A DNA stretch of 64,000 nt from Geosiphon pyriformis uo1 (taxonomy: Eukaryota > Fungi > Glomeromycota). Below the pieces are notes generated by a model that searched no databases, was not told the origin of the DNA, and saw only the letters and a program-made list of their open reading frames with translations. Within the stretch, counting starts at the first letter, position 1. Each line of letters starts with the position of its first letter. Below, piece after piece: positions 7,986 through 14,046 of this stretch. The DNA is taken from positions 248,001 through 312,000 of the forward strand of contig JAAOMT010000694.1 in assembly GCA_016748015.1 (NCBI GenBank), given 5' to 3'. A program made the position numbers and the translations under genes.

Positions 7986-8602
7986 TTAATATATTAAATA
8001 ACATAGTTAAATATTAATTTAAATTAGTTTTAATAAATATATTGTTGTTATTGTCTAAAACAAAAAAAAACCACAAAAAAAACCAATTTTAAAACAATTT
8101 TTAAAATAATTAACTTTAGTATTTTTGAAAAAAATTACTTTTGGTTATTTTGGTTCTTTTGGCTATTTAAACAATAATTAAAAAAATTAAAACAAAAACA
8201 ATACAATATTAAACTTATTTTTAATAATTACTTTTCAAAAAACTTAAAAGAAAAAAAACTTTTAATTAAAAACAAAAAAATGCTTTTTTAATAACCAAAA
8301 CTGAATATTAAAAAGTGTTTTAACAAAATACTGTTTGAATGCTTTTATAATTAAATATTAAAGACCAAAAAAAATAAGAGCCGTTTTTTGCTTTGGTTGT
8401 AATTATAAAATTGCAAAAGAAAAAAGTAATTTTTGTAATAAATTTTTTTTTAAATTTATTGTTTTGAAAAATGACAATTATTTGATTTTTTTAGGCCACA
8501 TATACAGGGGGGTATAAAAAGTATTGGACACTTTTATAATATGTTATATAAAAGAACTAACTTATGAATCGTTAATTTTTTTTTATTATATTAAAATACA
8601 TG

Positions 8603-9158
8603 TTAGTATTTTGTTTGACCCCCATTTGCTTCAAGAATAGCTTGAACTCGACGTGGCATAGACTTGATCAAATTACGATAGTAATTTACAGGTATCGCAT
8701 CCCATTCTTCCTTAACCCACTGTTCCAATTGTACAATATTTGANNNNNNNNNNNNNNNNNNNNTTTTCTTTATTTGATTTGGAAATTAATGGCTTGAGAC
8801 GAGGAATGCACGAGCGAAGTCCTTCTTGAGCTAATCCATTTCGAATAGTTTGTATAGAAATAGATTTGTTGGTATCTTTAATAAAATTCAATCGTATTTG
8901 AGAAAGAGTTTGGCGGGGGGTTTCTTTATTCTCCATTATTGAATATTTGAGTTGTTCACGTGCGCGTTTGTCAAGAATTTGTGGTCGGCCCGTTCGTTTT
9001 TTAGGAAGTTTTTTTAGCTCGTATGACTTCCATACACGTATTACAGAAGAACGTGAACATCCAATAGTCGTTGAAATCTTACTATTTGTATGTCCTAACT
9101 TTTTTGCTGAAATAATCCCTCCTTTTTGGTATTCAGAAAGTTCTTTTCTAAGACACAT
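8603..9158 (-). CDS. Tc1-like transposase (catalytic middle lost in an assembly gap)
   Basis: N-terminal HTH with the TGRP motif. After the N-run the frame reads EQWVKEEWDAIPVNYYRNLIKSMPRRVQAILEANGGQTKY*, the classic Tc1 C-terminus. Confidence 0.9.
8744..8763. other. Assembly gap (20 N)
   Basis: Run of N inside the transposase; the DDE domain is missing across it. Confidence 0.99.
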
Positions 9159-9604
9159 TTGATGCGGTAAATTTTTTCACGACAAGAATGTTTGATATTT
9201 TATAAATACGCGTATGATCCACTGTTGTGTTTTACAAGGACGCGATTTATGTTGATTTGTAGATTATAACTATAAGTAATTATAAAAAAAATTATGGCTT
9301 AAATTGGTAATGGTATTACTATATATAGCCTTTTTTATATATTATATTAAGTGTCCAATACTTTTTATACCCCCCTGTATTAATAAATCTTTGCTTTTGT
9401 TCAATGTTTAATGATGAAAGAACCAAAAATCTGGAAATCTTAAAGAAATGAGATTTTCATCAATTCTTTTTAATTTGCAGAGGCAATTTAAGCACATTTG
9501 CTTTGTATTGAAAATTTTTTGATCAAGTTAATAAAGTGAAATTGGTCTTTTTAACAGGAATTAAAATATTAACATGATATTTGCTATTGCATTTACCATT
9601 TTTT

Positions 9605-11768
9605 TCAGGACACCTGAGCAATCTCTCGAGCTTGTGCAAAAAATAATCTCGCTTCATGTTCTGTTTGATTGGCAATACAGTAGGAATTTCCTAAAAGATA
9701 ATAATTTTAAAAATGATTCGAGCCAGAAGACGGTTATCATGAACGAGTAACTTTGTTGAGATACCTCTGGGTACGCAAAATTGACCACCAATGGGTATTC
9801 GGAATTTTGATTTGTGTATAGTTATTGTAACCATTCCTTTAATTACATAGAAGGTCTTCCATATTCAAAACAAATGATATTAATTGCCATTAAATTATAT
9901 TTAGTAACAAACAAACAATCTTATTTACTTTGGGAAAACCCTTACCATTATACTGTCCTTGGTGTTTTTAGTTGGCTTTTCTGTTCCTTTGGGCAAGAAA
10001 ATGATACCAGTCGATAGAAATTCGCCTTCAGAAAATGATTTTTGGAACTTGTAATCATGGCTGTTGATATATTTAGGCTTTAACATTGAGGGCATAACGA
10101 CAACCTCTATGATTCAAATAAGTTTGAGTTTGAGTTTTTCCACATAAGAGATGAGAATGCAATTTTTTAACTCACGTCGAATCTCCTCGGAGCCATCGGT
10201 ACCCCATTCTACGACTTGAGCTTCACCATTTGTTTCTTCTTCAACAAAGCCATCTTCCTCTTCTTTTCGACGTTTTTGCGACTTTTTTTCAGATGTCCCA
10301 CGTCTTCTTTTGTGATAAAATTCAGTATTGTGGTTTTCATCATCCGAGAATCGGATCACCTCTTTGATAACAGGAACTGGAGTTGATCCTATTTTCGGAC
10401 ATTGGAAGAGAAACCCAAAACAAGAAGAGATTAATAGGAGAAATGGTTGACGGAATGATTGAACTTCAGATGACTAACCTTCCACCGGCCGTCCATATAC
10501 AACTTTCTCATTTCGCCAGAATTTCAAGGGCTTTATGCGGTTACGTGTACCTCTGCGTACTTTTCAGCAAATTGAAAAAACACATGAAACAAAACCCATA
10601 ATTACATTACAGAATTAATAAAATTGAACGTACATCCTTCCCCAGTATCATCCTTTGAAGCAGCGGCTTTTTTCTTATTCGTTGCTTTAGGTGGATTAAT
10701 CTTTTTTTTAGGTTTAATAAGCTGTATATTTTTGTCCTTAGGACCACTCTCTTCAATTTCTTGTTGGTAATCTTCATTATTATTTATTCCCAAATTAAAA
10801 GATTTATCATTTCCATCAGCTTCCGACACAGTTTCAGGTTTTTCGTCAGCGGTTTTTCTGGGTGAAAGTTTGGTAACCGCGGGAACAATAAATTCTTCCT
10901 CTTCTTCTTCTTCTTCTTCTTCTTCTTCTTCTTCTTCTTCTTCCATGTAGTCATTGGAACATAATTTGTCGACTTCTTCAAATCGATTATCATCTTTGAA
11001 TAAATAGGATTTTTGTTTTAGATTATGTGGTACAAATTCTCCAAATTTTAGTATGGAAGATTCATGTGCAGTCAAGAGGAAAAGTGAGCAAAATTCCCTG
11101 CCTTCCATTACAATTTCCATTGATATCTCCTCACTAATAGTAGTCTCGTTTCTAATAAAAGACGCCTCTTGTTGCGACTCACTATTGGGTTGTTCTTGAG
11201 CCGGCTGCAATTTGGCCACATTAAAGAAGTCGTCAATATCTTGAAGACCATCCGAGTCATTTTTAACTTTCCCTTTTACGGTCAAGCCCGTTTTTCTAGA
11301 AAAAATGTCAAATAAGAAAGTCTGAAAACTATTTTTCGAGGCAGGATTTCCCTAGGCTTTGAAAATCCTCTACCTTCCACGAACCCCAATTTCTGCAATA
11401 AATTTGTTGGCTCTCTTGGTTTTAAGCTTATTAAAATTGCTGGCGTGTATCATTGTTTCCTCGCTAGAATTGGTTTCATTTCTATCGGGAGACCCTCCTT
11501 GTTGTGATCCAACGTTGGAAGATTCTCGTCGTGACTGCGAATCCACCCCATTAAAGAAGTCGTCAATGTCTTCAAGGCCATCTATATCTTTTTTAACGTT
11601 CTCCTTAACAGTTATGCCGGTTTTTCTAGAAGCGGGTAAAGTTAGAATTGGGAACTATTTTTATGAACAAGTATTAAATTTTGATCGAATTCACCTTCCA
11701 CGAACCCCAATTTCTTCAGTAAACTTGTTCACCCTTTTAGTTTTGCGTGAAATATCGTCACTGGGCAT
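9605..11768 (-). CDS. MIF2: Centromere protein C (CENP-C/Mif2/Cnp3), multi-exon
   Basis: Mif2_N motif GVRGRKTG..VK...DGLEDIDDFF (twice), CENP-C motif VRRGTRNRIKPLKFWRNEKVVYGR (~10490-10560), and C-terminal cupin (KPTKN...FYVIKG.VT.TIH...GGQFCVPRGNSY...EARLFFAQA). GT-AG introns. Confidence 0.93.
10893..10944 (-). repeat. (GAA)n microsatellite encoding poly-Glu in CENP-C
   Basis: TTC repeats on the + strand, in frame with the exon. Confidence 0.9.
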
Positions 11769-12739
11769 CGAGCTTTCTTTTATTTATGTCCAAGGTTAGA
11801 AACTTCAAGGTTGAAGGAGACAAGTATTCTTTGCAAAAGTTGAAGTGGGAAATAACTCTTCTCACCAGCGTTATGTATTGATATTTTTTTAGTAGAACAC
11901 CAAACAGAAATCAGCACACTGCTCGTGACCTGATAATCATGGGTGACACTAAAAGCTTGACATCTGCGCACCAAATTGACTCGTGAAAAAAGATTTGAAT
12001 ATCAAAGATAATTTTAGATTTCATATTTTCCAATTTAATTGGAATCAAAAAATAGAAAATTTATTTATTTTTAAAATAGTAAGTCACAATAAACAAAAAT
12101 ATTTTCATGATGCTTTTAACTAGGTAAACTTGTTTGCTGGCAAAAAAGTTGTATTAATTATTTAAAACAGGGTGGTAAAATAGTCAACCACTTCATTTCA
12201 TCGTATAGCATTTCCCCTTCAAGGCAACAACTAACAGATATTATTTGTTTGTAATTGATTTTGTGAAACAAATCCATTTTTTTGCATTTTATGCACTTGC
12301 CGAACGTCACCATTTGTTCGTTAACTGACGATTGATCTGCATGCTCATGCAACATCACCTGTCAGTCATTTCTGCTATGGTAAGGCTTGATTTTCTACAA
12401 ACAGTCAAAGAAGTCACACGGTGGTTCGAAAACGCTGGCTGAACTTTCTCGTTGCACGTTTCTTTAATGTTTCTTGCTCTCCAGTTCCCGCGAATCGTCT
12501 CTTAATGCCCAACAAATTTTCTCTGTAAGTTTGCCGAAACTTTGAGAATTTTTTGTTGCTATAATGGGCTGCTATAGTTGATAAAATGGTTTCGGCATCT
12601 GGTGTGTTAGCTTTGACCCAATCCTTTTTAAACTTTTGATTTACTTTTTGATTATAGAAAACGGTTTGTCCGTTCGTGTTCACGACGTAATCGGGAAAGC
12701 GGACCATCAGCACCTGCCAGAAGCAACGAACTTCGTGAT

Positions 12740-14046
12740 ATGACTTCCGACCCAGCAGCACGACCGCTCTCAAAACATTCACAGGATCATTTTACTTATT
12801 CATGGCCTATACGCAGCTTTAATGAACTTGTAAATTTTTATCCAAACGGAGGCTTTGTTCTCAGTGAACGTTTTTGGTCACCACGGCCTCCTTATAACAA
12901 CGATTCAACCACAAAAAACAAAGATTATCCATATTTATGGCGTATCAAATTATATCCGAATGGAGTAAACGATGCAGCAAAAAATCATATCTCCTTATAT
13001 CTTGTAGCAATTCAAACACCCTATGAGAAACAAAATAACATTACATTCCGAGATAAAATGTTTCGATTAGAGGTCTTTCGACTCAACCCTGATCCTTCAT
13101 CTTCATCTTCATCTGCAACTCCCATTTTAATTCGCAATGAAACTTTTACAATGAAATTTGAATTTGAAGGGCTGGATGATTTCGGCCGTCACCGATTTTG
13201 CTCTTTCGATAATTTATTTCCAGGTGGTGATTCATCGACAGATGTGGATTTATTAATAAGAGTGAAAATCTTTAATAACGCAACACCGACGGTTGAAGAG
13301 CCCGTGGAACTGATTGAATCGGAATTTCCTTCTTTCAAACAACATTTGGATGATGGTCGATTCAGTGATATAGAGTTCACGTTCGATTGTGGTTCCAGAA
13401 TCAAAGCACATCGAATAATACTTGCCACAAGATCATCATATTTCGAAAAATTACTTGGAGATAAATGGCGAGAAGGACAGGTATGTTCTCACGAATCGTT
13501 ATATGAAAAAGTTCCATTACAAAAATTTCCAAAAAATGTAATTAAATTCAATCAGTTTTGACTTGTGATGCCTTAGATGAAAACAATCCCAATCAAACAT
13601 ATGGAATACACCACATTTCGATCCATATTATATTATTTATATACTGGAAAACTTGACGAAGGATTGGAGTTTGACGTGTTAAAAGATGTCTATTCAAAAG
13701 CTGATATGTTGAATTTAGAAAAATTGGAAGAGATTGTTGCGGATAGAATTGCTGACATGGTGGACCTAGATAATTGGGATGAGATATTAATGTTGGCATG
13801 GGAAGTCGGTGATACACATCTAAAAGAGGCTGCACTCAATTATGCTGTATCAAAATGGACCGAGATAAGAGATGGGGAAAATATGAAACGTGTAATGGGT
13901 TGTGGTAAGTCTCCTGGATTTTTACCCAAAGCTGTGGTTTTGCTGTCCATTTTTCCTGATTTCTCTTTAAATATTTATTTATAGGGAATATGGATTGGGT
14001 CGAGGAATTGATGTCTGCAGTGTTTCGAAATAAATTTTATTCATGA
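12740..14046 (+). CDS. MATH-BTB (SPOP-like) Cullin-3 adaptor, 3 exons (12740-13480, 13577-13904, 13985-14046)
   Basis: MATH motifs (FTYSWPI, WRIKLYPNG, ISLYL) and BTB motifs (FSDIEF, IKAHRIILATRSSYF, FRSILYYLYTG), then a BACK-like end. The frame is open upstream, so the start is uncertain. Confidence 0.88.

Follow-up and report, generated by a model that had tools for sequence, protein, structure and literature searches.

Among kinetochore scaffolds, repeated short docking motifs are known from KNL1 with its MELT arrays and from CENP-T with several Ndc80-binding sites, and the number of outer-kinetochore complexes that one scaffold molecule can recruit is set by how many copies of such a short linear motif its disordered region contains. 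In these cases, both the protein and its partner differ from those of the link between CENP-C and the Mis12 complex. To our knowledge, every CENP-C studied so far has a single Mis12-binding site, and we found no report in the literature of repeated docking motifs for the CENP-C to Mis12 link, nor a paper on a duplicated Mis12-binding motif in CENP-C. The CENP-C motif, an R-x-S/T-x-R-x-x-x-x-P-x-x-F/Y-W box, binds the CENP-A nucleosome, while Head1 of the MIND/Mis12 complex consists of Mtw1-Nnf1. The canonical fungal CENP-C, called Mif2 in yeast, starts with a basic G-R-K-T-G cluster followed by an acidic stretch that ends in D-D-F-F (PF15624; PDB 5T59), and has the CENP-C motif and the cupin further on. 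In Kluyveromyces lactis, residues 30-35 of Mif2 form a helix that packs on Head1, with the basic cluster nearby; human CENP-C 1-71 on MIS12C is described in the same work (PMC5101189).

The nearest published precedent for the locus described here comes from the grasses, where exon-plus-intron units in the middle region of CENP-C were duplicated recurrently, in tandem and in frame, within a single-copy gene (Talbert, Bryson and Henikoff 2004, PMC549713). The duplicated exons 9-12 of the grasses lie in the poorly conserved middle of the protein, a putative DNA-binding region, and some of them are under positive selection (PMC549713). In the glomeromycete Geosiphon pyriformis, by contrast, the duplication affects the conserved Mis12-binding motif, which is under purifying selection. 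The Geosiphon protein belongs to the same family as the canonical fungal CENP-Cs, with the same basic cluster and acidic stretch, a CENP-C motif and a cupin that follow towards the C-terminus, and the same ancestral phase-2 intron that is present in genes of Pezizomycotina and Microbotryum. It differs from them in that the module occurs twice in tandem, with the second copy in an internal position (about residue 93).

The CENP-C/Mif2 gene of Geosiphon pyriformis

The gene is located on the minus strand at 9605..11768 of the window, i.e. the whole 64-kb stretch of DNA that was analysed, and represents the single CENP-C locus in the 128-Mb assembly. Its exon model was built by hand from the minus-strand sequence and is supported by Pfam matches on the exons. 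It comprises eight coding exons with GT..AG borders on every intron, and since the exon lengths total 1620 nt including the stop (539 codons), the reading frame closes. Exon 1 (11768-11695) begins with the ATG at 11768, preceded by an in-frame stop six codons 5' of it (11784-11786), and encodes eight residues followed by the first half of module 1 (K-T-K-R...E-I-G-V-R-G), ending with two bases of an Arg codon. Intron 1 (11694-11626, 69 nt) is inserted in phase 2 in this Arg codon of G-R/K-T-G, where the slash after the Arg stands for the intron. Exon 2 (11625-11374) has a length of 252 nt and is symmetric (phase 2/2); it contains, in this order, the second half of module 1, linker 1 and the first half of module 2. 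Intron 2 (11373-11296, 78 nt, phase 2) occupies the same codon position as intron 1, and exon 3 (11295-10634) supplies the second half of module 2, after which come linker 2, a patch of hydrophobic residues, a run of poly-Glu and a basic region. The run of ~17 Glu is encoded by a perfect (GAA)17 microsatellite (10893-10943, minus strand), at which length polymorphism is likely.

Exon 4 (10559-10479) contains the CENP-C motif, R-R-G-T-R-N-R-I-K-P-L-K-F-W-R-N-E-K-V-V-Y-G, and matches the motif of yeast, Spathaspora and Trapelia column for column; the Pfam scan returned no separate model match for this exon of 26 residues. Exon 5 (10388-10176) separates it from the C-terminal cupin (dimerisation) domain, which is encoded by exons 6-8 (9605..10106) and interrupted by two introns. 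Matches to CENP-C_C (PF11699) run collinearly over these exons and cover profile positions 1-85: positions 1-35 in exon 6 (10106-9946, 27.5 bits), 36-65 in exon 7 (9855-9765, 32.2 bits) and 67-85 in exon 8 (9690-9605, stop included, 19.3 bits), with exon 7 by itself above the cut-off of 29 bits. Because the CENP-C motif in exon 4 is combined with collinear cupin matches in exons 6-8, the gene can be assigned to CENP-C/Mif2, in agreement with the initial annotation.

Just 3' of CENP-C, at 8600-9160 on the minus strand, lies a fragment of a Tc1/mariner-like transposase (helix-turn-helix N-terminus) that is broken by a short run of N, i.e. of masked or withheld letters. The divergent neighbour of CENP-C, at 12740-13561 on the plus strand, is an open frame that, by eye, resembles MATH in its N-terminal part and BTB/POZ in another stretch.

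Tandem duplication of the Mis12-binding module

The Mis12-binding motif is encoded twice on the minus strand, in module 1 at 11553..11744 (about residues 9-50), where it is cut by intron 1, and in module 2 at 11223..11423 (about residues 93-134), where it is cut by intron 2. The repeated unit measures ~321 bp and corresponds to a 252-nt phase-2/phase-2 exon plus an intron, arranged in tandem and in frame. Unit 1 and unit 2 can be aligned across about 330 nt, and a repeat finder detected a direct repeat of 52 nt with a spacing of 321 nt and an identity of 85%. When the window was scanned with a degenerate pattern representing the module's second half, exactly two matches were obtained, compared to 0.00 expected from 100 shuffles. 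Both introns cut the Arg codon after G-V-R-G (AG/A) in phase 2. Reading of the minus strand confirmed both introns at the positions given in the initial annotation, including the claim that they share codon position and phase, and translation reproduced the peptides quoted there for the two units. Together, the unit alignment, the direct repeat and the matching phase-2 introns bear out its central claim that the N-terminal module was duplicated along with its intron.

The initial annotation had also predicted two matches in a Pfam scan for Mif2_N, and two were obtained, with 31.8 bits for exon 2 and 24.2 bits for exon 3 at a cut-off of 23.5 bits. With a local HMM for the N-terminal motif, derived from 135 fungal N-termini, unit 1 scored 40.0 bits and unit 2 scored 27.0 bits. 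Unit 2 is the weaker copy, its Pfam score being barely over the cut-off. The K. lactis Mif2 peptide of PDB 5T59 (chain C) can be aligned with unit 1 over its residues 12-37, and S. cerevisiae Mif2 over its residues 12-40. Against residues 12-35 of Kluyveromyces Mif2, both units align without gaps, and for unit 2 BLASTP with exon 3 gave an identity of 46%, although a phmmer search with unit 2 against the PDB returned no match. Both units carry G-V-R-G-R-K-T-G, V-K, D-G-L and D-I-D-D-F-F. Of these residues, D-I-D-D-F-F and G-R-K-T-G are the counterparts of the Mif2 helix 30-35 and of the basic cluster, which is present in both modules in the form G-x-x-G-R-K-T-G. Unit 1 also has the extreme N-terminal position of the motif (residue 9), which unit 2 (near residue 93) does not have, and a basic R-R-x-S-S patch like the one behind the yeast motif comes after unit 1 but not after unit 2.

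Exon 2 is open in the proposed frame only, with 11 and 3 stops in the other two frames, and its GC content is 0.41 as compared to 0.30 and 0.35 for the introns. The similarity between intron 1 and intron 2 is marginal, the observed score being reached in 24 of 500 shuffles. For the coding part, unit 1 and unit 2 were compared by the method of Nei-Gojobori with bootstrap. Over the 41 codons of the motif the nucleotide identity is 80%, with a dN of 0.12, a dS of 0.89 and a dN/dS of 0.14 (bootstrap 95% CI 0.04-0.39; Fisher's test p = 3e-5), while the 37 codons of the linker have an identity of 54%, a dN of 0.58, a dS of 1.59 and a dN/dS of 0.37. Neutral drift of one copy predicts a dN of at least ~dS/2, which is 0.44 for the motif. 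The bootstrap probability that dN reaches or exceeds dS/2 is 0.41 for the linker and 0.004 for the motif, the latter from 41 codons only. Since the dN of the motif is far below dS/2, neutral evolution of either copy is rejected. As judged from this codon comparison, the data show that both modules are under purifying selection, and the signature residues are kept in both copies, as had been noted before.

The arrangement goes back to an old tandem duplication of ~321 bp of DNA whose breakpoints lay in the former exons 1 and 2, one in each. With breakpoints at these places, the ancestral phase-2 intron within the motif was carried along. One breakpoint per exon also makes the present exon 2 a chimera, in which the end of the former exon 2 is fused to the beginning of the former exon 1; its length of 252 nt preserves the frame. 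The linker between the two modules comprises ~45 residues, which we take to be disordered.

Module number and intron position in other fungi

Two profile searches (a full-length yeast CENP-C row plus the exon rows) yielded 170 proteins from Saccharomycotina and a few from Dikarya, and no relative from Glomeromycota. From these searches, 165 full-length fungal CENP-Cs were screened with the local N-terminal HMM. One module was found in 156 of them, none was detected in 8, and a single protein had two, which agrees with the statement of the initial annotation that the Mis12-binding module is normally single-copy. The motif was N-terminal in all single-module proteins of this survey, and its median start among the fungal proteins surveyed was residue 1.

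Other searches used the CENP-C exons singly as queries. For exon 2 (83 aa), HMMER gave 0 matches at E <= 0.001 against 1.84 billion representatives, the query being too short for this library, and a look-up in the ESM Atlas gave noise. The word-index search with exon 3 (225 aa) gave no match in a library whose length range does not include full-length CENP-Cs. Metagenomes were scanned twice, by alignment and with a degenerate DNA pattern, which gave no more than two MIF2 genes of yeasts and a single odd small ORF. The region 606-1223 of the metagenome contig Ga0209668_10176966 (1313 bp; locus L015) contains a basic ORF of 145 aa ending in a CENP-C-type motif, G-V-K-G-R-K-T-G ... E-N-V-D-D-F-F, with a Pfam Mif2_N score of 23.6 bits at the cut-off of 23.5. 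It is directly followed by tRNA-Asn and tRNA-Cys, and for its N-terminal 35 residues a relative with 53% identity exists on a viral contig of IMG/VR (L027), in which the motif is absent. This ORF may represent a giant-virus protein with a Mis12-docking mimic.

The sole two-module protein among the 165 is the CENP-C of the basidiomycete Microbotryum intermedium (P0074, NCBI BQ2448_2146, 745 aa; GCA_900096595.1), for which Pfam confirmed two Mif2_N stretches with 24.3 and 37.0 bits. A two-module CENP-C is not unique to Geosiphon, as M. intermedium has the same architecture, with tandem modules that are each split by the same phase-2 intron (annotated two-module region at 2001-2700 of locus L023, GCA_900096595.1). 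Here, exon 1 ends within the Arg codon of G-R/I-T-G, and a symmetric exon 2 ends within the Arg codon of G-R/K-T-G. This middle exon measures 255 nt compared to 252 nt in Geosiphon, and the spacing between the modules (~50 residues) is similar in both species. The two Microbotryum copies are, however, far more diverged from each other than those of Geosiphon, and the degenerate copy is the N-terminal one. In the literature on CENP-C we found nothing on two modules in Microbotryum and nothing relevant for arbuscular mycorrhizal fungi.

A first intron in the Arg codon of G-R/K-T-G, in the same phase, is present in single-module genes of Lasiodiplodia, Colletotrichum and Trapelia (Pezizomycotina), so that this position is common to four CENP-C genes of Dikarya, the three from ascomycetes and the one from Microbotryum. 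Since three single-module ascomycete genes have the same intron, the comparison indicates that the intron splitting the Mis12-binding motif is ancient in fungal CENP-C and was carried along by the duplications. Lineage-specific residues are common to both units within each of the two species (Q-F-F versus D-D-F-F), and the Geosiphon linkers align without gaps although the region evolves fast (38% amino-acid identity). On these grounds we read the duplications in Geosiphon and Microbotryum as having probably arisen independently. Two independent events are also more likely than one shared ancestral duplication that was later lost many times, as units that share residues by species and linkers that remained gapless in a fast-evolving region both argue against the latter; concerted evolution after an older duplication is a further possibility.

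Predicted function of the two modules

The likeliest reading, and one we consider somewhat better than even, is that the mature protein contains both modules and that each of them docks one Mis12 complex. Because the motif is conserved in both units, we infer that two Mis12 complexes could be recruited at once. With both modules in one CENP-C chain, the outer kinetochore would find two docking sites per chain and four per cupin dimer. Either more KMN networks would then be recruited per centromeric nucleosome, or a single KMN network would bind with higher avidity and more rebinding, and the linker is in principle long enough for two heads. Genes for the partners Mis12, Nnf1 and Dsn1 occur in the Geosiphon genome, where the head regions of Mis12 and Nnf1 are divided among several small exons.

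The initial annotation had suggested that a second module might compensate for a reduced CENP-T pathway. A search of the genome with Pfam CENP-T_C gave five matches, four of which are ordinary histone-fold exons. At locus L008 (G000:C651:990232-993342, plus strand, ~20-1700), adjacent exons match CENP-T_C positions 3-37 and 41-76, each below the Pfam cut-off singly, and are preceded by long N-terminal and acidic ORFs. Judged by this layout, L008 looks like a CENP-T-like gene, and since such a gene is present, the idea of compensation is left without support.

The modules could also have diverged in function, so that only one of them, probably unit 1 as the N-terminal copy with the better match, docks Mis12, while the other serves as a regulated, weaker or auto-inhibitory site or as a site for another partner. 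The unequal scores of the two units with both Pfam and the local HMM would fit such a division, as would the R-R-x-S-S patch after unit 1 only and the Microbotryum copies, which are unequal too. Auto-inhibition of the Mif2 N-terminus has been described in budding yeast (PMC7360964), which points in the same direction. A new function should, however, have shifted the signature residues, while the full set is present in both units, and the low dN between the units indicates that they were kept alike and not driven apart. We regard sub- or neo-functionalisation of one copy as unlikely.

Exon skipping is rare in fungi. This general observation bears on the question whether Geosiphon mostly makes a protein with one module, either by skipping of exon 2 or by a downstream start of transcription or translation. 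The symmetry of exon 2 would allow it: with this exon skipped, the frame would be preserved and one canonical hybrid module rebuilt, composed of the first half of unit 1 and the second half of unit 2. A Met at residue 58 of exon 2, ten residues before unit 2, is placed like the start before unit 1 and could serve a downstream start. Usual skipping of exon 2, however, would not leave its module halves as strongly constrained as they are, and we give little credence to a toggle between such isoforms. An assembly duplication or a decaying, untranslated pseudo-exon is very improbable and can be set aside, because the copies are old and, at the identities given above, too diverged for a collapsed or doubled read pile, exon 2 is open in the coding phase only, the dN/dS of the motif rejects neutrality, and the same layout is annotated in Microbotryum.

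Docking of one Mis12 complex by each of the two modules is thus the reading that we prefer. A wider version of it, that a glomeromycete and a microbotryomycete independently doubled the module by the same exon-plus-intron route and with the same ~85-residue spacing, selected for holding two KMN networks at once, we advance as a tentative and rather doubtful proposal. What is new here is the duplicated Mis12-binding module in a fungal CENP-C and its recurrence in Microbotryum. The practical stakes are modest: Geosiphon is not culturable alone, and models of the kinetochore would be refined and not overturned. How many KMN complexes an inner-kinetochore scaffold recruits, and how the CENP-C and CENP-T routes share the load, are active questions, and a natural two-site CENP-C in two unrelated fungi offers a test of whether the number of sites sets the copy number of Mis12 and Ndc80. 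The ancient intron within the motif makes an in-frame duplication of the module easy. If the proposal holds true, evolution would have a natural means of tuning kinetochore stoichiometry in the number of modules, and the conserved spacing would correspond to the shortest distance at which both of them can be occupied.
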